A stretch of 64,000 nucleotides of DNA from Dimorphilus gyrociliatus. Taxonomy: Eukaryota; Animalia; Annelida. A model generated the notes under the pieces. The model was not told where the DNA came from and did not search any database. It saw only the letters and a program-made list of their open reading frames with translations. The stretch spans positions 806,001 to 870,000 of the forward strand of contig CAJFCJ010000023.1 in assembly GCA_904063045.1 (NCBI GenBank). Reading direction: 5' to 3'. The translations under genes were made by a program, and so were the position numbers. How positions within the stretch are numbered: the first letter of the stretch is position 1; every line of letters starts with the position of its first letter. Below are positions 20,044 to 64,000 of this stretch, piece after piece.

Positions 20044-20982
20044 TTAGACATTACACGCGTTAATACTGCTATCTTCTTCGCTCACTGCAAAGATTATCTT
20101 CTCCAAGTGTTCACTGTCAGAAATAAGTTCTAAAATATTGAGTAAGGTGACCTTATCCGCTTTGATAAAGGTGTCTAGCTCTTCTAAATTCAATTTTGTA
20201 AGCAAGCTATGGGCATGATTGGCATAAGCAGTTGTTAAACTCCTTCGTATTTTGTTAGACAGTCCGGATTGAATGGCTTCGGTTGGGAGCTCGTTTAGAA
20301 ATTCATCAATTGCGTTCTTTGGTAGGACGGGAATATTGATCTCTTTTATTCTTTCGATATCACTCAACCGATTCTTAGTGTTAAAATGAGCTTCGTTCGG
20401 TTTGTGCTCCTCGTTAGAGCAGTCCACCAAGGCAAATGATCCCAGAAGACTAGTGTTAACAATGCAGTCCTTCTTTAATACTGTCCACGAAAAGTTTTCT
20501 TCGCTGGCTATCTGCCAGTTGGGTTTGGAGGCGAATTGGTGTTTCGAATGGATAAGCTTCAGAGGTCCAATAGGAGAAATTGGTAAGGAGAAGATGGCTT
20601 TAGTTAATTGCGTTTCATTTGTAGTAAGATATATTTGAAAGATGGGAGAGACAAGTTCTCCAAAGTTCGGAGCATCCTTAATATTCCAACTGAGAATTAA
20701 AACAATTGAACAATTTCTTGTAACTGAATTCTGCGGAATAAAAACTTTAACGTTATAGTCATCGAAAATTAATTTTCCTCCTTCGGGCGTCACTCTGAAC
20801 TTTTTAAACAATCTCGATTTGGACATTTCTTGAAAGAGTTTTTTGTTTATAGATAAGGCTGTTTCTAGTTTATTCTCTTCTTTAATTGGTGGCAGTCTGG
20901 CACTTTCAGAAAGGCTTATCTTTGGTAAGGCAGAGGGTCTGAGAACTGGAAAGGTTAAAGGTCTGGAAACTGGACTGAAATC
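20044..20982 (-). CDS. ZU5 domain plus C-terminal death-domain-like protein (UNC5/UNC5CL-like cytoplasmic module), terminal exon
   Basis: FRVTPEGGKLIFDDYNVKVFIPQNSV…ELVSPIFQI…GSFALV matches the ZU5 pattern (GG-L…V-L-IP…L-SP). The C-terminal helical segment LSNKIRRSL…LLTKLNLEELDTF…TLLNILELISDSEHLEKII resembles UNC5-type death domains. The frame stays open upstream of the track's start to an acceptor tttacaag|GAT at 20982. Confidence 0.75.
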   Translation of the reverse strand, partial: DFSPVSRPLTFPVLRPSALPKISLSESARLPPIKEENKLETALSINKKLFQEMSKSRLFKKFRVTPEGGKLIFDDYNVKVFIPQNSVTRNCSIVLILSWNIKDAPNFGELVSPIFQIYLTTNETQLTKAIFSLPISPIGPLKLIHSKHQFASKPNWQIASEENFSWTVLKKDCIVNTSLLGSFALVDCSNEEHKPNEAHFNTKNRLSDIERIKEINIPVLPKNAIDEFLNELPTEAIQSGLSNKIRRSLTTAYANHAHSLLTKLNLEELDTFIKADKVTLLNILELISDSEHLEKIIFAVSEEDSSINACNV

Positions 20983-21567: not shown

Positions 21568-22017
21568 TCATGCCTTTGTTTGTAGTCTTATGGCGGTCAA
21601 AGAATCTGTTTCAGAGTCATTTGAAGTGATACTAGTTGAAGCCCTGCTTTTCTTTGCATACGTTTGTCTTTCTAATAAACTTTTGTTCACCTCTTTTAAT
21701 TGTCCAATCAAATTCTTCTGCCTAGTATCCTGCTGTTTCAACTCTTGATTCTCTTTAACAATCTCTTCAAACATGCTAATCATTTGCTCGACCTCGCAAT
21801 CTGCAACATTCAACAATTGACCTAATTTTGTCTTAACATTTTTAATTTTCCTAGCAGCAGAGATGGTTTTTTGCAATGATCTAATTGTCTTATCAAATGT
21901 GGCATCAGAAGGCAGATTCAAGAGCTGTTTAACAGCGCCGATTTCGGCTTGTCGTATCGAGTTCTCGTCCATATTCCAACTGGCGTAGCAACCGTCTATA
22001 GCGCTGCTGCTTTCTCT
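21568..22017 (-). CDS. Coiled-coil-rich ORF/exon, possibly the 5' part of the ZU5-DD gene
   Basis: 134-aa ORF from the ATG at 21972 with heptad character (MFEEIVKENQELKQQDTRQKNLIGQLKEVNKSLLERQ). The frame is open upstream to an acceptor-like tctctatag| at 22017. It is on the same strand and about 590 nt upstream of the ZU5 exon. Confidence 0.6.
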   Translation of the reverse strand, partial: RESSSAIDGCYASWNMDENSIRQAEIGAVKQLLNLPSDATFDKTIRSLQKTISAARKIKNVKTKLGQLLNVADCEVEQMISMFEEIVKENQELKQQDTRQKNLIGQLKEVNKSLLERQTYAKKSRASTSITSNDSETDSLTAIRLQTKA

Positions 22018-23375
22018 CTATAGAGATTATTGAACGTTGTGTTTGCATTCATATTATTATTCGCGTAATTTTTTATTTGGAGCAAATCTTGCTTGAATGT
22101 AAATATGTTCGTTGTATTTTGACTAGATCTTTATTGAGTGTAGTGTAATTTGGTCGACTATTTTATATGTTTACTGTAAAAAATACTGTATTAATAAGCA
22201 AATTCGCTTACTCTATCATTTTAATGATTATCTTTTAGCAAATAGCCGACTCCTAGCCTTGCCATTTTCAAACAAGAATCCTTTCTAGCCCTTAATAATC
22301 CCTTCCTATATCGCCAATAAACAAGTAGGCTACTTTTCCATGCTCTTCGTCTTCCGCCTCCCTCGTTCTTCTTCTCGTTGCGACAATCCTCCTTACACCA
22401 CTTTCTATTTCATTTTTGCCTTTTTATTTTATAAACAGACTTGTTTATCTTGCTTGAATTCATTTGACAGCTATATATTAGCCCAATAAAAATATGGTAG
22501 ACCTACATAAGAATTCTTCGTAAGACTAAACAGCAGCAACAAGATAAGAGAGAGAGAGAGAGAGAGAGAGAACATTGGTATTTCCTTCTCAGCTCTTCCT
22601 TTTCCCTTTTCGTTAATTTCGTTTTCAATATGTACTGAAGTTTCATAAGAGTTAATTTAATAAAAGACCAATCAGCAATTATTGACTTAATTAACCGAGC
22701 AAATTTCGTCTAATAAACAGAGTGAAATGACATTTCACCTTTCTTTCCTTCTTCTATTGATTAAAATTCTTTCTTTTGCGTTTACTTTTGCATTTCAATT
22801 AACATTCCTTTACTCAACCGCTTTATTGACGGCGTTAACTCTTTCATACCCCTCGTCTTTAAAATTTGTTTCTTTTACACTTTTTTTTACCTCCTTCTCT
22901 CCCTCTACCCAATAATTCACTCATTCATTCATTCATTTAATTCTTTCTTTTTCCTGTCGAATTATTTGTCTCAATTCTTTTCATTTTCTTTTTAGTTTCC
23001 TAAATCTTAGGCTCTCTATACATTCTATTAATGCAATTAAAAATACAAACTTTATGCTTTTCCTCTTTTTTTCGGCTTTTACAACAAAGATGGCGTTAAC
23101 GTAGAGGAAAGCGGTTTCTTTTATCTTTGCCATTGCATACGTCAATGTTTTTATCATTTCTTAACACATAGATTAGCTCTGTGAACATAACAATTTAATC
23201 GGCTTAATCAATTTAAAATCAGCCTATTTTCCTCTTCTTAAATTACTTGACTACAAATAGAACAACTGATAAAATAATTATTACAGCTAACATCCAGCTA
23301 AGACGATAGAGGTCTCTAGATGGCATTATCAACTTTGTTAAACGATGAAAAAAAGAAAGAGGAAAATATGAACAT

Positions 23376-23408
<33 letters not shown>

Positions 23409-25159
23409 GAGAAAGAGAGAGTAGAATGTGTGGATTGCACCAGGGAGTTTATCGAGAGAAAAAAAAGATTAAAAGTGAGACAAAAGAGGGGGTGGGAGAC
23501 AAATAGAGGTAACATGATAAGAAGATCAGGAATTCTTTTTAGTGAGAGAGGGGAGAGAAAATAAGCAATGAGGATGAAGATGAAGACGAAGACGAAGAAG
23601 AAGCAAAGTGAAACGTAGAAATAGAGAAAGAGAAAAAAAATGGGACAAGGCAAAAGGAAAAGGGAGAATAGGAGACATATAGAAAAGGGGGAAAGAGATG
23701 ATTTCTAGAAAAAATGATGCTAGAAAATAAGACAAAACGTCGACATGACAGCAAGATGAATAAAAGAGAAAGAATGCTTTAGTTTGCTTATAGAATCGAA
23801 TTGAAATATTTATTTGAGTTATAATTAAATATTTGATGATAGGAGTGTATTTTGATCGATTAGGCGTCGCAAATGTGTCGTATAATTTAAATATAATGAA
23901 ACTAATGTCGATATTACCCACGCCCTTGATGTAAAATTCAAAAGTCTCCTCTATGCTGTTGACCCTTGAAGATGTACAGTTAATTAGCCATTTGTCTCTT
24001 CTTGGTATTTTTAGCAGGCAGGTTGTAAAATTTAATTGAACCAATAATTATTAATCTACAGTTCCTTTTATCATTTTCCCAATCGAATCGCAAATAGTCA
24101 ACTCTGTTAACTTGAAAAGCCTCGCTCAATGCCACCTTCCCCGCCACCTTGAATTGATTGCGAAAGATATAGAGAAAGATGAATAGAATGAGTGTTACTT
24201 TCTTGAGGCTGTTTCAATAAAAGTTTGTGGTTTTTAACAATAATTCTCTATAAGCTGCTGCTGCTAACTGGAAAAAGTAAAAAGTCAACTTTAAACAATA
24301 GAGAGAAACTGTTAAAGAAGGTAAGAAGGTTGGTGTTGAAGGAGGAAAAAAGAAAAGAACAAAAAGAACAAAAAAGCTGTGGAAGGCTGATAAAGAGTAA
24401 GCGTGTGAAAATGGAAAAGAGATATGTTGCATAATTTAAAACTTATTCATTCCATGGGATGGATTATGATTACAAGGGGAAATATAAAGGATTTTAAGGG
24501 GCAAACAAATCGAATATGTATCCCTGTGTATGTGTGCATTTTACATATATTTGTATACTAGAATGAAAGAACTAATGATTGATTGAATGAATGAATAACG
24601 AGTGGATGAATAGATAAATTTATACACAGTATATACGCTATATTCATTCACATTTCAATATATAGAAATATTAATATAAACAAATGAATAAATAAACAAA
24701 TGAACATTTAAAAGAGTTAGTTACAAAAAGAAGAATATCAATTTGTAGGGAAGGGACGTAAGGAGGAAAGAGAATGGTAAAATAGATATAGATTGATAGA
24801 TAGATAGATTGATAGAAAGACGGAGAGAAGGAAAGAAGGAAAGAAAAAATTATATCAAAAGATTCGTGCTCTTTCACTGGAATGAATGTTTGTAATTCAT
24901 AATTTTCCTTTGGCTAAATTATATTGGAATCAGGAAAAGATAAGGATGAAACTGTAGTAAATAACACGGATTACTAGCGGCTATGCTTTAAAGGCAAACG
25001 ATTAATATAAAGAGTAGCCTACGCCTACATGACGTCTGTTTTAGCGTCTCTAGAGGGATACTTGCCAACGGGATGTGGCATCATTCTTCTCACTTGAACC
25101 TCTTTTACTTTCTACTTTAAAGGGCGCAGAATCAAATTTGCATAAATTTACAGAGACGA

Positions 25160-25189
25160 GCCAATCAGGTACTTTTTGCTACGACGTCA
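25160..25189 (+). promoter_or_regulatory. CCAAT box and CRE-like element in the proximal promoter of the peptide gene
   Basis: gCCAATcag at 25160-25168 and GACGTCA at 25183-25189, 50-80 nt upstream of the ATG. A second TGACGTC lies at 25030. Confidence 0.5.
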
Positions 25190-25238
25190 TTTGTTGCAAA
25201 CGTTTTGGCAAACGGACTTTAACCGACAAATCGCCAAC

Positions 25239-25771
25239 ATGAAGTTTGTTTTTCTAATTGTATTAATACTTATTCCTCTAAGTGACGCTTCTTTCTTCGA
25301 TTTACCACAAGAAAATGGTAAGTTTTTCGAATCTCTTGAATAAACAAACTGTGTTTTGTGCAATAGTTTTCGTTCATCTTGTTTCTCATTTTTTTTCTTT
25401 CTTTATTTCTTTCTTTCTTCCTTCGTTTGCTTCGTTGCTTCCTTTTTTTCCTTCTCCCCTTCCCCTTCCCCCTTCCCCCATACCTGCCCCCTTCCCTCCT
25501 TGTCCACTCCTCGTGGTCCTTTGTTCCTATTGACACTTTCACATATCACCATCAAAAAGAAAACTAAAAACATTTAATACTATACTAGAAAAAGGTCTGA
25601 CATTTGTCTACTTTTAATCTAAATACTATAGATGAAAAGTTACTGAATTGGGATACTTACGCTCGTCGTCCCCTTCAAAAAAAGAGTTCCGTTTCGTGGC
25701 TCTTGGCGGCCACATTGAAAATGTGCGAGAAACAGCCGGAAAAATGTGACGGAATGATTGGAAGGGACTAA
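25239..25771 (+). CDS. 2-exon 72-aa secreted peptide (neuropeptide-like) precursor
   Basis: Exon 1 25239-25317 (MKFVFLIVLILIPLSDASFFDLPQEN, hydrophobic signal peptide, g|gtaagt). Exon 2 25632-25771 (tag|at…, phase 1 matches) gives DEKLLNWDTYARRPLQKKSSVSWLLAATLKMCEKQPEKCDGMIGRD*. It has RR and KK dibasic sites and a terminal G-R amidation signal. Confidence 0.75.
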
Positions 25772-26394
25772 AAGAAATAATCTATCGCCGTTTTTTCGTC
25801 TATTTCTTTAGTCTGTTGTTTTTATTTTCTTCTTCATCTTCTTCTTCTAGTCCTTCTACTTGTAGTTCTTCTTCGTCTTCTTCTTCTTCTTCTTCTTTAT
25901 GGTTTTTTTCCCCACAATGAACTTGTGTTAAGGAAGATAAAAAAAATGGAAGCGATAAAAGTAAAAAGGTGAAGAAAAAAAGATGACAATTATTGATTAT
26001 TTAGTTGATAATTCATTTATGATTTGTGGAGATTTACTATTGTTTTTCTTAGTTTTCTTGTTGCATTTTCATGTATATCTTTGATTGTTTTTTGTTTCGC
26101 AGACAAAAAATAAAACAAGTAAGATTTGTTGTCAGAAAAGAGTACTACTATAATAAATATACGGAAGATAACGACATACTCTATATAGTCTATCTTCTGC
26201 AATACTACTCTACTTTCAATTAGATGTTTCATTAACAACGCAAAGATCGAATGGTCAGAAAATTTTATTATAACATTGTTGGGAAAGGAATATTACTAAA
26301 CATCTGTTGAATAGAGAGAAGACTAAGAGAGGCGGAAGGATGACAGATATACAATATGACTATTAGTAGATAATGTAGTGAAAGTAGTCGCCTT

Positions 26395-26520
26395 ATCAAC
26401 AACAATAACAATTACGATGATAGTTATAGTAGTGTTGGTTATTACAATTAGTACTATCAGTTGTTGTTATTGTTGTGATAGTAGTAATAGTGGTAGTAGC
26501 AGTAGTAGTAGTAGTAGTAG
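26395..26520. repeat. Compound trinucleotide tract (AAC/TAG/TTG)
   Basis: Read directly; it produces the spurious poly-Thr ORF 26396-26593. Confidence 0.85.
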
Positions 26521-27095
26521 TTTTTAAATGAATCGATAATAAGACACGTAAGAAATATTTATTTTCTTTTGTATCATTTCTTCTCATTTCCAATCAATGT
26601 TAGTTAATTAATTGAAAACTTTTTCGACCTAGTTTTTTTGTAAAACTTAATCAAAAAAAAAATGATTCATAAACACCAATTGGAATGTCAGATTTCATTG
26701 CATTGTATTCTATAATTCTAAATGGTTCGCAGCAAAATATTTGATATATATATATATATAGATATATATATATATATATCATAATTCTATATTCATATAT
26801 ATTATTTCTATGAAATAGCTTCATTTTTCGTTTGCTAACTAACGCCATAGTTTTAATATTGAATTTTTCATATGTTGAAAGAAGGAAAAAAAATTCTCCT
26901 CTGCCATTTTACTTCTTTTTTTTTCGTTCCTCTAAACAACAATGAAGAAAGCTGACGGAGAAATTTTTTTCACAGACTTGTGTGGAGAAAGAGAAAGTAG
27001 CGCAAGATAGAGATCGAGCAGATAGCAAAGCCAAAAAAATTATATATACATACACACACACACATATATAAATATATATATACATATACATATAT

Positions 27096-27127
<32 letters not shown>

Positions 27128-27517
27128 AAGCCTTTTAAAATATTAGTTTCTTTTCTTTCTCTAGTTAAAATAGCAAAAAAAAATGTTTTTGTAAATATAA
27201 TAAGCAATAAGAATATAAGCAAATAGAGCGAGCAGTCAGGCGGATAGAAAGAGAAAAAAAAAACGGCACAAAACAAAGCATTTAAATTACCACTTTTTTT
27301 TGATTTTTAGCAAAAAACCTTACATTTAAAAAATAAAAATGAAATATTCATAAATTTTATAAATATTTTCTCGAATTGGTTTCATCATCATCATCCTCAT
27401 TATGAATTATGAATTATGATTATTATTAAATTTTTAATATTTTCTTCTTTTTTTTTTCTTTTTTCAATTCCCACCACCAATAATTTTTCTATTTCTTTGA
27501 TTCTTTCTTTGCTTCTT

Positions 27518-29290
27518 TTACGACGAGTAGATCGTCTTCTGAACGTGCGTCGCCCGATCCTATTTTTGGTGGGGAGAGAAAGAATAAATCAATCAGCGTT
27601 CGAATATTATATTATATATTATATATTATATATATATATATATTAAGAGAAATAAAAAAAAACCAAATTTAGTGAATGAATATGTGTTGATGAATGATGA
27701 AATGTTAAATTTTCCTATTCGGAATAAGATGATAAGCAGCATTCGCATACATCTACATCTACTCATACAGACGCATGCCCAATTATGCATTGAACATGAA
27801 CGAAAGAAGAGATAAAGAAATAAAGAGAACTAAACATAAAAAATTAAAAGAATGAAAGTTTACAAGTTCTATATTTAAATATTTGTTTTTTGCGGGTGTC
27901 TGGATTTAGGGTTAGGGTTAGGGTTAGGGTTAAGTGTCGTTCTACAGCAACAGAAAAAAAGAAAAAAAAACCAAATAAATTAGAGAATAAAATAACTCTT
28001 CGCTTTCTTTTCTTTTACTTTCTCTTCGTAGATTTAAAAGAATATTCATAAATAAACGATCGAAACATAAAGACAGAAGGAAACTCTTAGAAAATTGTGC
28101 ATAGTAAATTATTTGTTTGTTTGTAGGTTGGTTGTTTGTTTTGTTTGTTTGCCTGCTTTGCTTGTTTTATTGGTAATTAAATTTTTTTTGCTGGCTACCT
28201 CATTCGACATATTGATCAACTTAGTAGTAATATTGGCTCCAACTCCGAATGAATCTATGTCAGTCTCGATGTCGTTTGGCCCTCCTCCTGCTCCTCTATG
28301 GCCGGCCCAAACCTATTATTGAACAATAATAAAACTCTCTCGTCTATTGCTGGCCGCCCCTTTTCTTTGTAGAGGCAATGCAGGGTTTTTTTTTGTTAAT
28401 GGTTCAAACCTTGGCCTTTTGGGATGGTCTTAGAGAAAACGATGCAAAAGAGAAATCAATCCTTTTCTTAGGGTCGTTATCGATATTTCTTGTTAAACGC
28501 CATCCGCTTAAATCTTCGATCTTCTTGCCGGTGTTTTCCAGGGCAATGAATCTACCGTCAGCCGAGCATTCTGATATGGCAACTGGTCCCTTTGCGCTTC
28601 TTTGATAAGTGGTTTTGGCCGACATTTCTCCTTTGACCACTTGACTGACTTTTAAGGTGTCTGTAAAGTTAATAGTTCCTCTTTGTCTTTTAAATTATAA
28701 ATAAGAATTCTTTATATTGTTTCTTATTTTTACTTTTTGTTCTTTTATTTTTTGTTTTGGAATTGTTTTTTTTGCTGTTTTTTGCTGGTTTTTTTCACAT
28801 GTTTTTAAAGCAAATTTAAGTTATCATTTATAGTTTTGTTGTTTAGTTTAAAAAGGGAATAATCCTAACAAAACAACAACAAAAAAGAAAAATGCACTTA
28901 GTAAAACACACCAAAACAAAAAATCATCTTGTCTTATTAATATCTTTTTCGTTTCTCTAAAATACCTTAGAAGTTACTGTTTTTTGGGTTAAATTAGTTA
29001 AAATATATAACTAAAAGTGCTATCTCTTTTACGGGGTGCCTTCTAGTAGTTGTTCATCTTTAATTGTTTGTTTTTTTTTTGTTTATCACCTTTGTTAAAC
29101 AAGAAACAACTAAAAAAAAACCATGAGTCTTTTTTAGTTATTAATTTCTCATTTTTTTTAAAAAAAAATTAAATTAAGACAAAAAAAAAGACCAAAAAAT
29201 AAAATAAAAAGCATGTTTGTTTTAAAGGATTAAAGCCATGCAGAAAACTCTTGAAAGAGAGATAGAGAGATTTCAATACACGCATGTAAA

Positions 29291-29343
<53 letters not shown>

Positions 29344-32300
29344 GCGTCCGCATCTCTGAATTAAACATTCAACAATAACGTCATCAATAAGCTCTCTTCA
29401 TTCTTCAGATTAAAGAAAACTGCTAATATAAATACTTATATATTAGCATATACCATATTGTATACAGTTAACTTTATCTGAAGGCGAATTGAACTTGGTG
29501 GTTTTATAACACAGCATTAACCTGCTGGTTGTTGAGTAGGCTTAGATTCTGTTGGTTTAACATCAGCCTTAGCGATAGAAGAAGTGGAAGTGGAAGATTT
29601 TAAAGCCTCTTCCGAAGCCTGACTAATTCCAGTCAGGGCACCGATCAACTGACTTATATCAGAGCTATGTTGTTGGTGCGATCTTTTGTTAGGCAGCGAA
29701 ATAAAAAAAAGAAGCGTATGTTAGTAGAGTGAAGCATTTTTGTTCACATACCATCGTCGTCCATTCTTTGACTCGCTCTGGTTTGCGTGTCAATGAACGA
29801 TTCAACGACTTGACGAAGACCAACTCTATGAACATTTAATTAATACATTAAATATTATAATTATAGTTTCTTTTAACGCTTTCAATGCTTTTCAATTTTG
29901 TATATTATTTTAATTTCAATTCGCCAGATGGCGAAAGTGAAACCTATCGACTAAAAGGTAGAGCTAGCAGCCTGCATTTTTTTTCTCCCCTTTCTGCTTA
30001 ATTAATCCGGTTTGGTGCATACGTATTGATATTTAATCGAGGTTCGCTTGTTGTAATGCAAACGCACGGAATAAATCGACAATAAACTTCTTTTTTATAT
30101 TGTAGATATGTCCTTGTTATAGGTGGCGTTGGTGAAATAAAGAATAGAAAAACCTGGCGAAATAGACTGATAGGTAGACGAAGAAGAAGAAGCCCAGATA
30201 AAGATTATCTATACTGTATATAGTTTTTCAAATTTTTGCGCTGCATTACATCGAAATCGCTAATGAACCGTCGTATAATTAATATAGTTGTAATTAACTA
30301 TAGACTTTGAAATCTATGATCATCCTAAATGAGGTTATGCACTCGGTCTTTTCTTCTCTCTTTCTTTCTTTCTTTCTCTCGTCCTTTTTGTTCAAACTTT
30401 TGCTGGCTGCCGCCACATAGAAGTACAAATCAAAGGAGAAGAGAACTAAAAGAAGAGGAGGAACTTTAAGTAAAAGAAAGTCCCCTCTATGCTCTTTCTT
30501 TAGATATTAAACTCGTCTTATATAAAATATTTATCTTTGGGGATCGCTAGAGAAGGGCAAAATAAATTGACACGTTCCTTCTTCTTCTGCTTCTTCTTCT
30601 TTTCCTCTTTTTTTAATTTTCTCCATTTCTCCTTGTCACCAAAACCGTCCAATACAGAAATAGGGAGATAAATTTAAGACGAAGACGGACAGACGATACA
30701 ACGAAGAATATATTAAAAAGTATTCCACTAACCTATTCTCCTCTCCTTCGAGCAGTTTTCTGTAAGCAGCAATCTCCAACTCCAAGCCAAGCTTTGTATC
30801 CATAATGTTTTGTAATTCTTTCAGAATGGCTTCCATTTCTGCTCTTAGTTTGGCAACCTCTTGCTTCAACTCGTCGTTCTCCTGTTGCCATTCTCTCTCC
30901 TTCTCCTCGTAATCTCTTCTTAGGCTGTCGCACTCCTTCTCTAACATGGCATTTCTTGCTTCCAGATCGGCCAATTTCGACCTCATATCTGACAGTTGTT
31001 GCTTCAAGCGTTTCGACTCCTCCTTTGCATGTTGTGTTTCCATATTTTGACGAGTAGCCCCGGTGCGGAATTCTTGCATCTGTCAAAATTAGAATGAGTT
31101 GAAGGGACGAATGGTACATCGTCTATATATAATTTCTGCTGTCTCATCAACGCAATTACTGCGTTAATAGAAACGGTAGGACTAGTTTTTATTGCGGCAA
31201 AAAAAATCAATAGACGAATTAGATAGACGTAGGCCTGGTAAAAAGACACCAGCGTCACTGACCTTGAGGTTGTAGTATGTTTCCAACTCTCCGCGCATCA
31301 ATTCTAATTTCTCGTCGTACGTGTTGGAGATTTCTCTGAGACATTGGGCCATTTCGTTCTTCCAGAATTCTCTGTTTTCGGCAGTAGTGTCTCTGTAAGC
31401 GAGTGCCGCCAGCTCTTTCATTTCCTAGAGATGATATATGCAACGTAAATAAACAAAAACAACAATAATAATGATAATAGCATCAATAGGCAAACAAGTG
31501 TTTAACTGGCTAAATATCGCTTCTTCTAATTGTACATATATAAAGGATTTGCGTATGGGAAAAGGTATATATTGTATATATTAATTAATACAAAATATAT
31601 TTGAGGTAATTCTCAGTGATCACGTTTCAAAACAAGTTATGTCAATAGTATTTTAGAAATGAAACCGTTTGCTTAAAAACATATGTTTCGCAAGCTACTT
31701 TATAAATTGCCACTGTGTAAACGTTGCCCTATTGAAAAAACTATTCATATCGTTTACTTACCTGTTCGTGCACTTGCTTCATGAATTCCAACTCTTCTTC
31801 GAGTGTCTGGCGTCTGTTCTCAGCGTCTATATGATTTAGAGTTTCATTGTCCAGATCCTGAATAAGTAGGCGAGCAGAGGGGGGTGAAGAAAAAAATGTT
31901 TATTTTAATATTTATTTGAATGAAATTAATAGGGTCCCCGAAGGCTTTTTCCCCTCTTTCTCTCTCTCTCTCTCTCTGTCCCTGCTTGTTAGTCTATAAG
32001 AGTGAATTAAATGATTTAATCACTTTGCCAACTGAAAGGGTTGAATGCGTATAGAGAACCAGCCAACTTGTTCTCAATACGATCAACAACAGTTGAAAAA
32101 ACTCTAAAGAGTTTTTACTATGTCTATTGCGTCGTAGACAGAGAGAAAGAAAGGAAAAAAGAGCCAAAAACATAAAAAGGTATCATTTTTCTTACAATTC
32201 TGGCTCTGTTCAATGCTTCCGTTAGTCTTTGAATCTCTTTCTTGTCTCTTTCGCGATCAGTCTCCAAAGTGTCGACTCTTCTCCTCAAGAGGTTAATTTC

Positions 32301-33907
32301 GCTCTCGTACTCCGATAATTGTTGGTTAGACCTTTCAATTTTTTCCCGATCAACGGCTCTAGCTTGCTGAAGATCTTCGCATCTAGAATTACAAACGACA
32401 ACCGAATAAGTCTAAACACGTTTCGTAAACGTATCATAATTAATTCAAAAGGTCGTTAACTGGTCATAAAATAACCTTCGAAACACTTCTTTTGATGATT
32501 TAACAGGGGAATATATATATATATATATATTCTCTCTATACATCTTTTTATATTAACTATTTGGAAAGAGAATGAATATTCACAATCTTTATTCATTGTT
32601 GGCTTTCTTTCATTCATTCATTCTTTCCTTCTCTCCGTCAGACTGAATACAGACTATAAGTAGGTCTATCAGTCTGTCTATGAGATGATTTATGTACGTG
32701 CATTTATGTGCTTATATTTGAATTTGGATTGCATAAACCTATTCGAATTTGTGTTGATATTTGTTTGTTTATTTGTTTACTTATCTATCTATCTATTTAT
32801 TATCGTTTTGTTGTCGTTATATATCTATCTGATGTGTTATACGTTGGCTTCCAAAAGGAAAATGTTATTGGGTTTGGTCTATGAAAAGTATTAACAATAG
32901 CATTAAATGAATATGGAAGGAGGAGGAGGAGGGAAAAACGTAATTAAATATAATGATATATAATGGATTGTAGCGAAATTTGATGATGATGATGATGATG
33001 AGAAAAAAGTTGTCACATCGAAATTGAAGAGGAAAGAGGAGAAGAAGGCGAAGGAAAGAGAAAAATTAGATTGATAGAAATGTAGGGGAAATAAAAGTAA
33101 AAAGTCAATGAATAAACCATCCAGTTTATTGGAGATAGCCACTTGGCAGGAAAATAGACCATCAGATGACTTTATATTGCCAACTTCCGGCTATCGATAA
33201 AGTAGCCAAGAAGGGGAGGGCCAAGAGTTAAAAGTCTCTCTTAGAGTGTTAAATAAATATTGATATTTTAAATTGTAGAGTTTGCCGAGTAACCTAATGG
33301 TTTTCGAAGTTGGGTGTAAGAATGGAGAAGGGAACCGGAATTTTAAAAATAGCCGGCTATATAAGGAATATTGAAAAACTATTCAAATTTAGTCATTCAT
33401 GCATGCATGCTAGCCGAGAAGATCCGTTCTCTATTTGCGTACGGACGCTTCAAACGAACTTATTCAAATTTCTCGCGTTTAAAACAAACAGAATCGGCTT
33501 GACGGGGAATAAATCACGTCCGTACCTGACGACACCCAAAATTCACATTTTCATAAGTTCATATTTGGTTAAAAAATTTAAATATTTCTCTTTTTTTCTC
33601 TGTTTTTCCCCCCGTCTTTTTTCAACAGTCGCTCTTTCTTAGAAGAAAAGAAAGATGGTATTTAATAAGAAACTAGGAAAAGTACTTTTCAAATTTTCCT
33701 TTTCTTCCTCAGCTTTCTAATCCAATACGTTAATCAATTCATAAATGTCACTTAATATACAAATGCAGCCTATAATATATTCCTACATTTCAATATCCTT
33801 ATTTTTACAGACAGGTATGGTTAAATATAACTAGACGGACAATTATATATATTGTATATATACAGTAGACATAAAGGTGCATTTATATGTTTGTATGAAC
33901 ATATATA

Positions 33908-33954
<47 letters not shown>

Positions 33955-34797
33955 TATTTACACCAGTCTATCCCTTTTCATTCTACATTGTATATGTTGG
34001 TAATTTGTATACAACAAGATTTGGTATGTATGATTATCAACTCTAGCTGGTTGTGCATATTGTTCAAGTTGAATATGATACTCTAATTGTAACCCTGAAT
34101 GACTGAATGAATTTACAAGGTTTAGTGAGGGTGGCGCTGCTACTAAGTTTTAAATCGAATAAAAAAGGAAGCAGCAAAACATTCTCTAATGGAATGTTTC
34201 TGTAGAATGTTGACAAGAATTAAATTCAACTTACTTCCTGCGAAGTTCGTCAATCGTCTGCTCCAAACTTGTGCACTTTATCTCCAAAGTGCCCTTTTCC
34301 TTCTCCGCCTCGTCCAACAATTTTCTCGCTTCGTCCAATTCCGCCTGGTACATAGCCTTAATGGCGGCTGTCTCTTTTCCCCACTTATTCTTTAGATTCT
34401 CCAATTCTTGGGCGAGTTTTCTGTTTTGTGCTTCCAAGAATCTAACCTTCTCTATGTAGCTGGCAAATCTTTCGTTCAGGTCTTGCATGTCCTTCTTTTC
34501 TCTTTCGCGTGACGTTTTTACATTATCGACTCCGACGCTCGACATGGCAGCGTAGGCACCGCTCGGTGCACCGTAAGACATGTTCGACGTTGACCTTTCA
34601 ATCGAATAACCCGAACGACCAGGAGATCTAGCAGGACCCATCGAAGTTCTCTGGATAATCGTAGTCTTCTTACCCATGAGTGGTCTTCGGCTGGCATCAT
34701 CGTCTAGAGAAGAGTTTGTTCTCGACTCGTAAGTTGTCGTACGAACCGTACTTGGGCCCTCGGACGAGGAAAATTCTCTGGTGGCGCGTACACTCAT
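27518..34797 (-). CDS. Protostome cytoplasmic intermediate filament protein (NF60/NF70-type, lamin-tail domain, no CaaX), 611 aa
   Basis: Exons 34797-34235, 32382-32196, 31857-31762, 31424-31263, 31079-30733, 29825-29752, 28660-28410, 28312-28199 and 27559-27518; all GT-AG with matching phases. Coil 1a motif SREREKKDMQDLNERFASYIEKVRFLEAQNRKL, rod-end LEIAAYRKLLEGEENR, and lamin-tail Ig fold (KGPVAISECSADGRFIALENTG…LSGWRLTR…VWAG). It ends DRATHVQKTIYSS*, with no CaaX and no obvious NLS, so it is not a nuclear lamin. Confidence 0.93.
27906..27932 (+). repeat. Interstitial telomere-like (TTAGGG)4.5 tract in the last IF intron
   Basis: ttagggttagggttagggttagggtta read directly. Confidence 0.85.
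29522..29682 (-). CDS. Candidate mutually exclusive alternative exon of the IF gene (alternative to 29825-29752)
   Basis: 161-nt open exon (RSHQQHSSDISQLIGALTGISQASEEALKSSTSTSSIAKADVKPTESKPTQQPA). It is preceded by a TACTAAC branch point and pyrimidine tract with acceptor aaaag|, and followed by donor g|gttaat. Its phase is 2 to 1, identical to the 74-nt exon. Confidence 0.6.
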
Positions 34798-38636: not shown

Positions 38637-41600
38637 CAAACAAACAAACAAACAAACAAACAAACGAAGGAGGAGCGTGACCGCCTACTTAAGTAAGGTA
38701 TGCGAGAGAAATCGCCCAAAATAATAATTTTCTATGGAAATATTTATATTCGGAATACTTTTTACAGTTTTATTTGCAAAGACTAACAAATGCGTTCTAA
38801 AATTTAAATATAGCTAAAATAAACAAGCACAGACATGAAGAATTTTTAAAGGTTCAAAAGAATCTAGGATTAATTTTTATAGGTTATTTTTATTAAATCT
38901 TAGGAAAAGAGGTTTTAACTAAATTATACTACTTTTCCCTTTTCATATTATATCTAAAATATCAACAAATAACAATTATAACAATTGCTCCTTTATGTCT
39001 TCGATTTCTCTTTACTGACCTATCTTTAAGTTTTCATTTTTAGTTTTACCCATTCTACCCTTTCTAAGTTGTCTCTTTTTCTTTCTCACATCCAGTGGCA
39101 GACAGTTTTTCTCTTTCTATTTCTCCTTTCTTTACAGAGAGGGAGAGAGAGAAAGAATAGTTTTCGTAAGCGTTGTAATATTTGTATTGAAATGTTTGAA
39201 AACGAGTAAATAAGCGGAATACATAAGGTAATTAAATAGATGCATTGGGCAATGAGAAAAGTCATTGATGATATAATTACCCTTGTTTCACTTAATAAGG
39301 AGAAAGTATTCATTGAAAGTATATTGTTTATAAGTATTTATTATCTAATAATACTAGAGTAGTAGATAGTAAAAGGACTATTTAACACGAACAGTCTATT
39401 TAGTGTGTATAACGTATATATGTAAAAATTGTCGTTTCTTTTCAAATAAAACTTTATACAAATCATTGCTTAAGCTCTTCATTTAAAAAGCAATAATTAT
39501 AGATTCGCATTTATATTCAATAGCTCAAACTCGTCCGTTAATTTACTTGTTAATAATGAGTTAATAGTCGCCTTTTACTAAAAATTTGTCATAAATTCTC
39601 AATAAATAAAACAAATCCAATTCAACAAAAGAGATTAGATTAGCGGTAGACGCTTTTCTTCTTTTCTATTGTTAATACAGTCTATACAGCTCTTGAATTA
39701 TAGAGTATATCAATTTATTTTCCATCGTGCATTACACTTTACAGTTTTACACATTCTGTGTAAATACATAGAAACAAACATCTCGTTCTTTTCATTCTTT
39801 TACAACAGTCATACTCGATTTGGTTCATTTGCCTGTTGAAGCGCCATCTTCTGCTTTTCCGCCAAATTAACGGGAAAACTATACGTATTGTTTGCTGGTT
39901 GATAGATAAATGATAGGAATAGTAAAGATCGGTCATCTGTAAAAAAAAAAACAAAAAAGACATAATTGAAAACAAGATTAAAAGGATTTTTTAGCCTATT
40001 TTAGGAGATAAGTCTGCAGGGCTGTAATAATTAATTGAGATAAAAAGGTGGAGATAAAGAGAGAGAGAGAGAGAGAGGTAGTGAGGCAAACCAAGAAGAA
40101 ATATATAGATAAATAGACAAAGAAAAGATATAAGGTACACAGATAGGCAGACTTAAACATAAAGAATCGAGTAAAGGGAACGGGGTACAGTATAAAATGA
40201 TACAAACGAGCATAATAGATAAAAAGGACGGAGAGCGATTTGAAAAGAGTGAAAAGTTAATAGGATGATAATATGGTAAAAGAGATTTCTTTTGGATGTT
40301 GATAAAAAATTCATAAGAAATTGATGAGCCTAAAATCCTCGTATATATATTATTATAAGAGTGTAAATATAGAATAAAGTAAAAATAAACTTTTCTTTTA
40401 TAGATAGAAATCCTATTTCTATAAAGTAAAAGTTGGAGTTTTTTTCTGTTTTGTTTTTTATTTTCGCTTTTCTCTTGTCTCAAAAGAACGATCGCTACAT
40501 TATTTTTGCCTTTTCACTCTTATTTACTGTTGGCAGTTTAGCTTTTTATTCGGTTTATTGTATTGTTATAGTCCGGAAATTTAGAAAGGATTTTATGACA
40601 GCGATTTTTAGTTGGCGAGTTGCGCTTAAGATTACAACTTCCGTTCACTTTTTGTTCTTTTTTTTTCTCTTTTCCTTAACTTTTTCACTCTTAATTTTCT
40701 ACTTGAAATAGAAAAAAGTTGACGAAATAGAAGAACAAAAGAGACGACCTCTAATTTAGCCGATTCAGCAAAAAAAAACCGTTAATGATTTTATAATAAA
40801 CTTAAACCTCCCTTCTTTAGCAAACCTCTATTTAAGAAAAAGTTCAACAGCCTCTGAAGAGAAGGTATTTATTTGGAGCTCGAGCATAAAAAGGGCAAAC
40901 TCTAGATCAATTACCAACTTGTAATTGTTGAATGCGGATAAGGAGAGTAAATGACCAAAGTTCTAAAAGGTGTCAAAGATAACTTTACCGCTTGGCTTGG
41001 TATCATTTCAACGAGTGTTTCTCTTTAATAAAAGAGTAAATGCCTTTTTTTACGGCCCCATTGATAATATATATACATATACGTGTGCGTATATATACTG
41101 TATATATACAGTATATTTGTATATTTAACTAAATAATTAAACAAACAAACGATTAAACAGCAAGTATGCTAAATAAACATGGAAATTAATTATATAACAG
41201 ACAAAAACATTTTATTATTTAATTAGTTCAACGGAACTCGATTTAAACAGTTTATACTAAATATTCCCCTTTTCTTCTTTCCCTCTTCAACTTTATCTTT
41301 TTCAACCAGTTTATAAAACTTCATAAAAATGGCGTTTAATTTTTTTAGGATAAGATATGACGTCATCAACTACTGTTGAAATGTTTAGAGACGCCGCAGT
41401 CGCTGTGCGGGAGCCGTTTCATTCAACCGGTTAGTACTTTGATGTTTTTTGCGAGTTTCTCTTCCAAGAGCTGAGTAGTTTATTTCTCGTATTTGAGAGG
41501 ATAAACATTCAAATAAGGAGTTTACAAGCATGTATTTCCTTTATTCTTTTTTTTTTCCTCTTTTCTCTTGTTTTCGTTAGGAAAGTTGAAGATAAAGCAA

Positions 41601-45661: not shown

Positions 45662-46184
45662 ATGCGCTGTATTCTAGCATGTTTAGCTGTTCTTCTTGTT
45701 GAGGCATCATTTGCAAATTTCGCTCCACCGTATCCCATTCAGGACATGGACCCAGAACACGGATGTTTATTCGCTTGTTATGGCTGTTACAAGTCACAGG
45801 TTACTTAATATTTTCTTTATTTATGTTAGCGAGTAAAAATAATAAAAGACAAAGGCTGGGAGAGAGTTATTTTCGGTACAAGGAAGAAAAAATTTTTTCC
45901 TCTTCCTTTTTCGGCCAGAGAAAATAGCTGTTTCCTAGTTTGATAAGAATATAATTGTTCTCATTGTTAGTGTACTCCTTTAATAAAAACATATATATAT
46001 ATATATACTATATATATATATATATATATATATGTATTGAATACAGTCGGAAAAGATTTTGTTGGAGTGCGCTAACCATATTTGCACTGTGGGTTTGATG
46101 ACTGGAACGATTCATAGAAGATGGTTTCACACGTGTCCCGATCTAAAAGTAGTGTTCGATTCGAAATTTAATCAATTAAGTTGA
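45662..46184 (+). CDS. 2-coding-exon 91-aa secreted six-cysteine peptide, eclosion-hormone-like
   Basis: Exon 45662-45799 (MRCILACLAVLLVEASFA|NFAPPYPIQDMDPEHGCLFACYGCYKSQ, donor gttact) plus exon 46047-46184 (acag|SEKILLECANHICTVGLMTGTIHRRWFHTCPDLKVVFDSKFNQLS*), phase 0. The mature region has C-x3-C-x2-C-x11-C-x4-C-x16-C. An acceptor at 45639 implies an upstream non-coding exon. Confidence 0.72.
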
Positions 46185-49266: not shown

Positions 49267-49381
49267 ATGGAGGAAAGACGTCTACCGTCCCCAAATTCGT
49301 TAAATTCGAGTATATCTTCAAATGGTGCCCAAGTTGGCGTGATTCGGACTCTAAGCGCGTCTTCGCCCCGTCAACATCACG
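49267..49381 (+). CDS. Putative first exon of unknown gene (Ser-rich), downstream exons not resolved
   Basis: MEERRLPSPNSLNSSISSNGAQVGVIRTLSASSPRQHH followed by g|gtaaaa (phase 1). A perfect CRE lies 80 nt upstream. I found no convincing phase-matching partner exon. Confidence 0.35.
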
Positions 49382-57301: not shown

Positions 57302-59526
57302 TTATTTAATGAATTCCCAATTCTGGGATAACGAATCGTCGCAGTTTGCCAACTTGATTATTGATCCCATTTTAAGGCCGCTGACGTCCATACATAGTTT
57401 CGTAGGTATATGAACAAGTTGCTGGCCATCGATTTTAAATTTATCTCCTCCAACTAACGTGCTAGTACACGGCTCCATATATACGATATTTTCATCTTTA
57501 GTATTGCGCAATATTGCACAATTCTCTTCCGTTCTTAATTGACTAGTTTCGGTTAGAGTAAATATCTGTTTGTTTATAATTATTTTACATTATTTGTAAA
57601 AAATATTCGTATAAGTAGGCTAGTAGCTTTGCCTATTAGTTTGTAAGCTTAATACCTGATTAAAGCTATCCTGACAATAATAGACGCCCAGGTTGTAGCC
57701 TTTCCTAGGATTTCCGTTGAGCGAGTCTAGGCAAAAGTTTGTTGATGGATTTCGAATTTTTCCGTAGAATTTAACATTTTCATCGAGGATAAACTTTTGA
57801 GGGTAGACATTTTTCAAAAACCAAGAGAATGGATGGCAATTTAACTTTTTTCTCAGTTCAATTCTCTTGGAGACGTCTCCGAATTGCTTGTGTAAAAGAT
57901 CCTTCCTCTTAGCGTAAAAGAATCGTTTATATTCGTCCATCCAAACTTCGGCGACTCTTCTAGAATTAATGCCGTGGTAGTCGTACGTTTTACTTGGAAA
58001 CCCGTACGGATGAGTATCTCTGAAAATATGTCCAACTCTTGAACAGGGAATAAACTCAAGCGATCCACCGCATTGCCAAACTCTAAATGACATCTCTAGA
58101 TTTTCCCCACCCCAAATGTCCATACCTGGATCATAAGCGCCAATATGAAAGAAAAATTTCCTACTAATAGCTAAAAGTCCTCCGGCCATCGTTGGGGATC
58201 TTATAGGATCTATCCTTGTTTTTCTCCTCTTTAGTTCAAATTCTGGTACGGATTCCCAAGTGAAATGCATACTCCAAGTGAATCCACCGATAGACCCGCT
58301 CCCACCTCCGTAGTAGGCCAGTGTCGACGACGAGATCACATCAATCATTGGACAGAGTACGGCAGATTCTTTTTCGTGTATTCTTTTCATTAATGGTTCT
58401 ATCCAACCTTCGGACGCTTCGCAATGAGCGTCCAAAAATATGAGTACCTCCCCTGGAAGAGAACGAAACAAGCGAATGTAGTTGGATAATAAAAAGATAT
58501 TCTCCCCTTTTCATTAGGAGAGTTTTCTTTCGTAAAAGATGATAAAAAATCAGATTAAATCAACAATATTCTATATCGCGTACACTAAATAGAGTATAAA
58601 CATATACAGTATAATTTATATATAGTATATACAGTATATACAGTATATATATATATATATATACTGTATATTAAATGTGAAATCGATAACTTTACAACAA
58701 CCGTCATCGGCTACAGCTGATATCATTCAATCAATGCGTTTGAATTGAAGAATTTTACGAGACAAAAAAAAAGCTGGTTTAACGTATACATAAAAAACAA
58801 ATACTTGACACATATAACGTGGAGAGAAAGAACAGAGAGAGACAGAGAGAGAGAGGGCCAAAAAGACAAATTGTGGAGTCACTATTGACTTTTTGCATTA
58901 TTACCTCTGGCCTGTTCTGCTCCAAATATTTTAGCCCTGATAAGGCCACTTCTCTCTGGTGTCCTAACGATCCTAACGATGTTGTCGGGAAAAGTTTTAC
59001 GTAGATAATTTTGCAGTGGTTCAAAGAGTTCGGGCCTTGTGCTGGAATCATCCACTAATAAAACTTCGTGTAAAAGTTGCGGAGGTGACCTATTGACGAC
59101 GCTATGAACTGTTCTTAGAATAGCTGTCCACTCTTCGTTGAAATATATAATAACGACACTGGCTGCCGGATATTCATTGATATTATATTTTTCGTGTCTA
59201 CAGAGCTTATCTCTTCTATCCGGTATTCGCCTATCCAAACTTATCTTCCTGCTGGCTACGACGTTAAATCCTTCTTTCTTTATTTCGATATCGTGTTGTA
59301 TTTGTTCGTCTTTAGTGATATGAACAGCTTCGCCATTCTCTCCTGGCCCCTTAACTTGTCGATTCAGACTCTTTAAGTATCGCTTTAGTCGAAAAGCTTT
59401 CAACTCTTTTGAACTTATCGAGTGAATTGAATCTGTGTCAGGTTTCAGTAGAGAAACGATTATAAGTAGGGTACAACTTAGAGATAAAAAAACGAGGATT
59501 CTCCTGATTTTCCGCGGTAGCATCAT
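57302..59526 (-). CDS. GALNT: Polypeptide N-acetylgalactosaminyltransferase (GT27), 560 aa, 3 exons
   Basis: Exons 59526-58905, 58452-57656 and 57565-57302, phases 1/0 match. It has a type II N-terminal TM segment, GT-A motifs (SVVIIYFNE, LLVDD, FLDAHCE), the Gal/GalNAc-T motif (SPTMAGGLLA…DIWGGENLEMSFRVWQCGG…CSRVGHIFR) and a C-terminal ricin-B lectin ending QNWEF. Subfamily not assigned. Confidence 0.95.
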
Positions 59527-63107: not shown

Positions 63108-63576
63108 ATGGACGATTTCGAAGCTTTTAAATTGAGAGCATCCGGTAATTTTAGTTCTGCAGAAAAATTAAATTGTCCTGTTGAAGTGACTGTATCAGAA
63201 AGTGAGGATTTCCCCAGATCGAGAAGGAATAGCTTTTTTGGACCTAATGAGAACTTACTAACCGTACCTAACCAGTCAATTTATAAACGGCAAAGATCCA
63301 GATCTGCAGATATGGGAAGGGATAGATCGACACTAGGAGATATCAGGGAGAATGAAGAGGACTCGGAAAAATATGTCAGAGTTCGGAGTTTCTCTTGCAC
63401 GGAAGGAGGTCTTTTGAATCACGGTGATATTCTTCGTTTGAGAGAAGTGAGCAGAGACGCTATCGAAGCAGAAATAAAGGAACACAACATCCTTATAGTA
63501 GGTGCCTCCGGAGTGGGAAAGACGTCACTAGCTCAACAATTTGCAACTTCGGATTATCTCTGCGCACAAGCCGACG
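63108..63576 (+). CDS. Rgk: RGK-family small GTPase (Rad/Rem/Gem-like), first coding exon; gene continues beyond the window
   Basis: Long N-terminal extension with RVRSF…GGLLNHGD, then P-loop ILIVGASGVGKTSLAQQFATSDY, as in invertebrate RGK proteins. The donor gac g|gttggt is at 63577; the track ORF runs on into the intron. Confidence 0.8.
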
Positions 63577-64000
63577 GTTGGTATCTAGGGAATGCTATCA
63601 ATTGTTTCATAATCGTCGTAATTTGTCATCAGTTTGTTAGAAACGATTCGTTCAAGTAAAATCCCATTAAGAGGATCATTATAAAACGGTGTTAATGTAG
63701 AATATTTGTATATAATTGACGAGATTTTAGGCTTAATTAGAGTAAACATACGTTAGAAGAATAGCTAAATGTTGATAAATTTCTAACATTGCGTACTAAT
63801 AGCGTATTATAAAATCTACTACGGACTATATATGTTTATATGTTTTTACTAATATATTTGTGCACTGTCTACCTGATAAAAATGTCATAGGAACACGTAC
63901 TCAACGTATCAGATTCAGTCTTATTGAAAAGGGAAATTTTGCCCTTAAACAAACAGGTATTGGTAAGATGGTTATATTGTTTAAATTATACTTTTGACAT

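Follow-up and report, generated by a model that had tools for sequence, protein, structure and literature searches.

The locus examined here raises the question of whether a short, unannotated segment of the Dimorphilus gyrociliatus genome encodes a secreted precursor of an amidated, disulfide-ringed peptide, or whether AT-rich DNA has come to resemble such a gene by chance. The segment lies in a 64,000-nt stretch of animal DNA (~33% GC), referred to below as the window, from an assembly of 349 contigs and 77.9 Mb in total. Taking codon usage, sequence controls, upstream motifs and homology searches together, we consider the candidate to be probably a real protein-coding gene, while the specific reading as an amidated ring-peptide prohormone is put forward tentatively.

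The candidate gene model and its surroundings

The candidate occupies a 6.4-kb gap between DgyrCDS13101 and an intermediate-filament gene, a gap wider than the mean gene spacing of ~4.8 kb in D. gyrociliatus (PMC7854359), which counts in favour of a real gene at this position. The landmarks around it, one recognised by comparison with D. gyrociliatus gene models and the other three by Pfam on raw ORFs, are as follows:

20044-20826, minus strand: ORF 100% identical to DgyrCDS13101 of D. gyrociliatus
28404-34797, minus strand: intermediate-filament gene with a lamin-tail exon
57620-59526, minus strand: polypeptide GalNAc-transferase (GT2, Glyco_transf_7C and ricin B)
63108-63659, plus strand: P-loop NTPase-like ORF with weak STAND/NACHT matches

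The gap is otherwise packed with simple repeats, exon 2 of the candidate being its GC-richest, non-repetitive segment, and an Rfam search of positions 22000-28500 returned sub-threshold miRNA noise in AT repeats only. We also weighed, and dismissed, two assignments of the region to its neighbours, namely a 3′ UTR of the intermediate-filament gene, the last coding exon of which ends 2.6 kb off on the opposite strand, and a promoter of DgyrCDS13101, the start codon of which is 3 kb distant. Elsewhere in the window, the scan for signal peptides followed by donors also picked up an ATG ORF at 45662-45799 on the plus strand, with a signal-peptide-like start and then a Cys-rich stretch.

A preliminary description of this DNA had proposed a phase-matched two-exon gene encoding a signal peptide, an acidic propeptide, RR and KK sites and a terminal G-R-D followed by a stop codon. 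Every one of these features was located in the sequence where it had been placed, exact to the base, and the full model comprises 72 residues:

25239..25317, plus strand: coding exon 1, 26 codons and one base, ending in phase 1; the acidic spacer begins after the signal peptide
25239-25289, plus strand: predicted signal peptide of 17 residues, with cleavage after S-D-A
25318..25631, plus strand: phase-1 intron of 314 nt with a low-complexity, pyrimidine-rich core
25632..25771, plus strand: coding exon 2 including the TAA stop (25769-71), encoding the remaining acidic spacer, RR, KK, the predicted peptide and G-R-D
25664-69, plus strand: RR, within the acidic spacer
25679-84, plus strand: KK, ahead of the predicted peptide
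25685..25759, plus strand: predicted mature peptide of 25 residues, C-x6-C with Pro at loop position 4
25760..25768, plus strand: Gly-Arg-Asp, a putative amidation-donor Gly and monobasic cleavage site, with the stop codon next to it
26109..26114, plus strand: first AATAAA past the stop, a possible poly(A) signal 338 nt 3′ of it; a second lies at 26152

The ATG at 25239 has a good context with A at position −3, and the N-terminus that it opens, with M-K as its n-region, 12 hydrophobic residues as its core and S-D-A in positions −3 to −1, passes a simple signal-peptide heuristic. The donor G/GTAAGT at 25318 agrees with the consensus at six of seven positions, and the acceptor tAG at 25629-31 is preceded by a YTRAY-like TTAAT located 13-17 nt 5′ of it. 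A phase-1 intron soon after the signal peptide is typical of secretory genes. With 314 nt, the candidate intron is ~5 times the D. gyrociliatus median of 66 bp (PMC7854359). A 3′ UTR running to either AATAAA would measure ~340-380 nt, this hexamer being weak, uninformative evidence because it is common in DNA of such composition.

Within the predicted peptide, the Cys codons at 25724-26 and 25745-47 flank the six-residue loop E-K-Q-P-E-K, and the second is followed by the tail D-G-M-I. The amidated, oxidised form has a computed monoisotopic mass of 2764.34 Da and a pI of 5.9, making the predicted peptide neutral to slightly acidic, and its N-terminal half is oddly hydrophobic, two traits that count against the prohormone reading. 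AlphaFold2, run in single-sequence mode on the exon-2 piece only, placed a helix over the N-terminal 15 residues of the peptide (pLDDT ~79), a moderate-confidence element that we judged insufficient by itself as evidence of a fold family.

Judged from sequence only, the precursor has the generic prohormone layout, with KK before the peptide and Gly before the C-terminal basic site. Prohormones are classically marked by a terminal G-R with a dibasic site upstream of it, and the basic residue at P8 fits the usual rule for monobasic cleavage. Both elements have parallels among the published precursors of D. gyrociliatus, in which the G-R-D context occurs in NPY/F 3, NPY/F 4 and the sulfakinin-like precursor and KK flanks the repeats of the WI and achatin precursors. 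The RR in the acidic spacer is directly followed by Pro, which makes it a poor convertase site that probably escapes cleavage, and this counts against the prohormone reading.

Coding signal and upstream sequence

Codon usage was scored with a log-odds table, the 14,327 training codons of which came from 55 long, non-repetitive ORFs in the window and 200 kb of the same scaffold. Exon 2 scored 0.133 per codon, compared with a mean of 0.138 for known coding pieces of the same length; short open frames averaged −0.120, and exon 2 fell in the top 3.4% of 2009 of them, a rank that is supportive rather than decisive because the score also favours purine-rich low-complexity frames, for which reason it was set aside as a stand-alone discriminator. 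Exon 1 scored approximately zero, as might suit a signal peptide. The GC content of exon 2 is 45%, compared with 28-37% in its flanks.

We then defined a complete model as a signal-peptide-like ATG ORF with a donor agreeing at six or more of seven consensus positions and an acceptor with a pyrimidine tract, joined in phase to a terminal exon, 30 codons or longer, with an internal dibasic site, a terminal G-[KR] and a codon score of at least 0.1. Across 264 kb of real sequence, read on both strands, the candidate locus alone yielded such a model, and the reversed 264-kb control yielded zero. Multiplying the component rates of the reversed control gave an expectation of ~0.009-0.012 chance models per strand-Mb, or ~1.4-1.9 per genome, with the true false-positive rate being higher, several-fold so for the genome-wide figure, since the thresholds were set after the candidate had been seen. 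Signal-peptide-like ATG ORFs numbered 44 in reversed and 34 in real DNA, so that the signal peptide alone carries little weight, and approximately half of random donor positions reach some open downstream exon. By the reversed-sequence control and by codon usage, the gene model as a whole is internally consistent and statistically unusual.

The same description had placed a CCAAT box and a CRE upstream of the gene. Both motifs are there and the CCAAT box is strong, but the CRE is a non-canonical site with a 7/8 match, and a further site of this kind, missing from the earlier account, lies 5′ of the CCAAT box:

25030..25037, no strand assigned: CRE-like site TGACGTCT, matching 7/8 of TGACGTCA
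25159..25167, plus strand: CCAAT box AGCCAATCA in an extended NF-Y context, fitting RRCCAATSR
25182..25189, no strand assigned: CRE-like site CGACGTCA, a 7/8 match to the palindromic CRE, 50 nt 5′ of the ATG

In 264 kb of genome, the GACGTC core occurs at 0.14 per kb and RRCCAATSR at 0.098 per kb, the latter with five copies in the 64-kb window. Here, two GACGTC cores and one RRCCAATSR fall inside 160 bp, in a cluster that ends 50 nt before the ATG, and by our own arithmetic from the two rates ~0.006 such clusters are expected per window. Judged by its motifs, the CCAAT/CRE cluster is rare and promoter-like. The CCAAT box is 78 nt and the nearer CRE-like site 50 nt from the ATG, distances so small that they would leave an exceptionally short 5′ UTR, which counts against the model. 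The 163 nt preceding the start codon are free of ATG, with ~3 predicted from base composition, and the nearest upstream in-frame stop is at 25143.

Two further observations concern this type of sequence. Perfect palindromic CREs (TGACGTCA) are found in the window at 41358 and 49186 only, and the second of these precedes the apparent first-exon ATG at 49267 by 80 nt, with a further GACGTC at 49277, suggesting that a short CRE-to-ATG geometry may be normal in the window; CRE-type sites may mark promoters in the D. gyrociliatus genome. In addition, a non-repetitive open frame of 62 codons (25054-25239, plus strand) with a mildly positive codon score spans the CCAAT/CRE region, its closing TGA overlapping the candidate ATG, and we read this frame as non-coding promoter or leader sequence.

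Relatives and rival readings

Homology queries were run exon by exon rather than as the joined 72-residue model. Queried with exon 2 (45 aa) and the surrounding 54-aa open frame, a word-index search of proteins of 25-94 aa returned no candidates, and HMMER found zero matches among 1.84 billion representatives, the length of which was unrestricted; the candidate model was found in neither the 5.8 billion nor the 1.84 billion protein collection. Pfam contained no family for the candidate, and the ESM Atlas gave low recognition with bacterial fragments only, which we treated as noise. Paralogue searches of the genome with exon 2 as DNA and protein, exon 1 as protein and the promoter region recovered the locus itself only, which argues that it is not a repeat, an LTR or a member of a gene family.

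The published list of D. gyrociliatus precursors contained no match, by string or by eye. Because that list was built by BLAST and repeated-cleavage patterns, an approach that misses single-copy orphans, absence from it is weak evidence; approximately half of its precursors carry no gene-model id, so that being unannotated is normal for small prohormones in this species. A relative whose protein is 72% identical to DgyrCDS13101 (~80% in coding DNA) was found in the Logan runs SRR23372216, SRR23372228, SRR23372229 and SRR23372231, in contigs of ~1.1 kb with a terminal poly(A) run, which suggests that they are probably RNA-derived. Among the transcript-derived proteins of this relative, as given by the gene calls on these short contigs, no exon 2 orthologue was called; as gene calling often passes over short ORFs in contigs of 1 kb, we count this as mildly negative.

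That these features are a chance arrangement is quite possible, although we incline against it: an open frame of 55 codons would happen to lie in phase behind a hydrophobic ATG-ORF and a GTAAGT in AT-rich DNA, with no protein made from them, and the island of unique sequence with its CCAAT/CRE cluster may then act in regulation or as promoter for a non-coding transcript. The equal abundance of signal-peptide-like ORFs in the reversed control (44 versus 34) and the ease with which about half of random donors reach an open exon fit this reading, as do the blank result of every homology and paralogue search, the long, low-complexity intron and the stretch of ~340 nt past the stop with no canonical poly(A) signal; moreover, a genome-wide scan should yield at least one to two such models, and more under looser criteria. 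Against it stand the controls, in which the full feature set is ~100-fold rarer than one per window, the coding-like codon usage and raised GC of exon 2, and the promoter-like cluster directly upstream with no intervening upstream ATG. The explanation that we tentatively regard as best is an unannotated, lineage-restricted two-exon gene of D. gyrociliatus encoding a 72-residue secreted prepropeptide.

Such a gene need not serve the nervous system, and its product could be a small secreted protein or peptide of non-neuronal kind, for example one that serves in defence or reproduction or as a gland secretion, and it may lack KK cleavage and amidation. The signal peptide and gene structure would be identical under this reading. 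Secreted peptides of the effector type are typically fast-evolving orphans, and the predicted layout, in which a short disulfide loop at the C-terminal end comes after a helix, is reminiscent of helical host-defence peptides that end in a loop. Nevertheless, the pI of 5.9 is unlike that of cationic defence peptides, and the G-R end with its upstream dibasic site is a prohormone signature that D. gyrociliatus uses as such, leaving a non-neuronal product unlikely. Far less probable still is a highly diverged paralogue of allatostatin-C (ASTC) or EP/CCHamide. The six-residue loop, the Pro at loop position 4 and the placement of the peptide behind a basic site at the very end of the precursor would suit ASTC, and the spacing of second Cys, Gly and amide would suit an arthropod CCHamide; however, the absent loop Asn, the non-aliphatic Glu in first place and the phase-1 rather than phase-0 intron speak against ASTC, the distance from the signal peptide, the missing loop aromatic or His and the missing GG/GA speak against EP/CCHamide, and canonical members of both families, two for ASTC and one for EP, are already present in D. 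gyrociliatus.

Proposed maturation and comparison with known peptide systems

Under the ring-peptide prohormone reading, we infer that the gene is transcribed and spliced and that its product passes through each of the steps below and serves as a signal. Transcription would proceed from a TATA-less CCAAT/CRE-type promoter at ~25030-25230, the 314-nt phase-1 intron would be spliced out, and the signal peptide would be cut after Ala17 (S-D-A). A prohormone convertase would then cleave after KK (residues 43-44) and after Arg71, a carboxypeptidase would trim the basic residue, and peptidylglycine alpha-amidating monooxygenase would convert Gly70 into a C-terminal amide on Ile69, while a Cys58-Cys65 disulfide would close the six-residue ring. 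The predicted product is a 25-residue peptide, helical in its N-terminal half and both ringed and amidated at its C-terminal end, that would act as a neuro- or endocrine signal. The wider proposal of the preliminary description, an undescribed peptide signalling system, is hypothetical: we think it unlikely that the locus encodes a 25-residue neuropeptide or hormone, amidated and disulfide-ringed, that is confined to dinophilids, lacks detectable kin and acts via an orphan GPCR of the worm, having arisen anew, or changed until its origin is unrecognisable, within a miniaturised annelid.

If true, the prohormone reading would enlarge the D. gyrociliatus neuropeptide repertoire, previously described as ‘canonical’, by an orphan ring-peptide precursor, and it would mean that precursors present in single copy and specific to one lineage escape both genome annotation and peptide mining by BLAST or motif. 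As Dimorphilus combines a tiny, tractable nervous system with a compact genome, peptide localisation and receptor pairing would be quick, and the Logan contigs of the 72%-identical relative are a ready comparator for the conservation of small genes in D. gyrociliatus. Annelids have many small orphan precursors, and the gain would be incremental unless a receptor and a function were found.

Neither the searches nor the family feature tests produced a clear match to an already named peptide family. The geometry noted in the preliminary description, C-x6-C with an amide spacing like that of CCHamide and Pro at loop position 4, stands, but the other family features are missing, and its statement that the residues match neither CCHamide nor allatostatin-C agrees with our comparison, in which the defining features of both are lacking. 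On the features tested, the candidate resembles a ring-peptide prohormone yet would belong to neither ASTC nor EP/CCHamide.

The candidate matches the arthropod CCHamide spacing C-x6-C-x-G-x-x-amide. EP/CCHamide peptides have two Cys and an amidated C-terminus, occur as a single peptide directly behind the signal peptide, carry in the loop an aromatic residue and often also His, and have GG or G plus A between the second Cys and the C-terminus (PMC6617912). Similarly, the candidate has two Cys, a predicted amidated C-terminus and a single peptide copy. By contrast, its peptide is C-terminal, 27 residues past the predicted signal-peptide cleavage, its loop contains neither an aromatic residue nor His, and no GG/GA follows the second Cys.

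In allatostatin-C, the protostome loop has exactly six residues, Asn among them, annelid and mollusc loops begin with an aliphatic residue, and the precursors share a phase-0 intron (PMC9048919). The candidate likewise has a loop of exactly six residues, a single peptide at the C-terminal extreme of a short precursor with a basic site before it, and one intron within the proregion. In contrast to ASTC, its loop is charged, lacks Asn and begins with Glu, four residues and the amide follow the second Cys instead of one or two residues, the intron is in phase 1 rather than phase 0, and sequence similarity is undetectable. The two canonical ASTC genes of D. gyrociliatus (ASTC 1 and 2), which stand beside one canonical EP in its repertoire, have the loops L-V-N-I-V-S/A.

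A further comparison is with the orphan annelid proneuropeptides of the Platynereis and Dimorphilus lists, such as MNC, QERAS and HFAamide. These are known from transcriptomes and some of them by mass spectrometry, whereas the candidate is known from genome sequence alone, and it differs from them in that no orthologue was found for it, even within annelids. In its organisation it is like them: the precursor is short, contains one peptide and shows a signal peptide, basic sites and Cys residues, and it is of a kind in which kin are confined to a narrow lineage.
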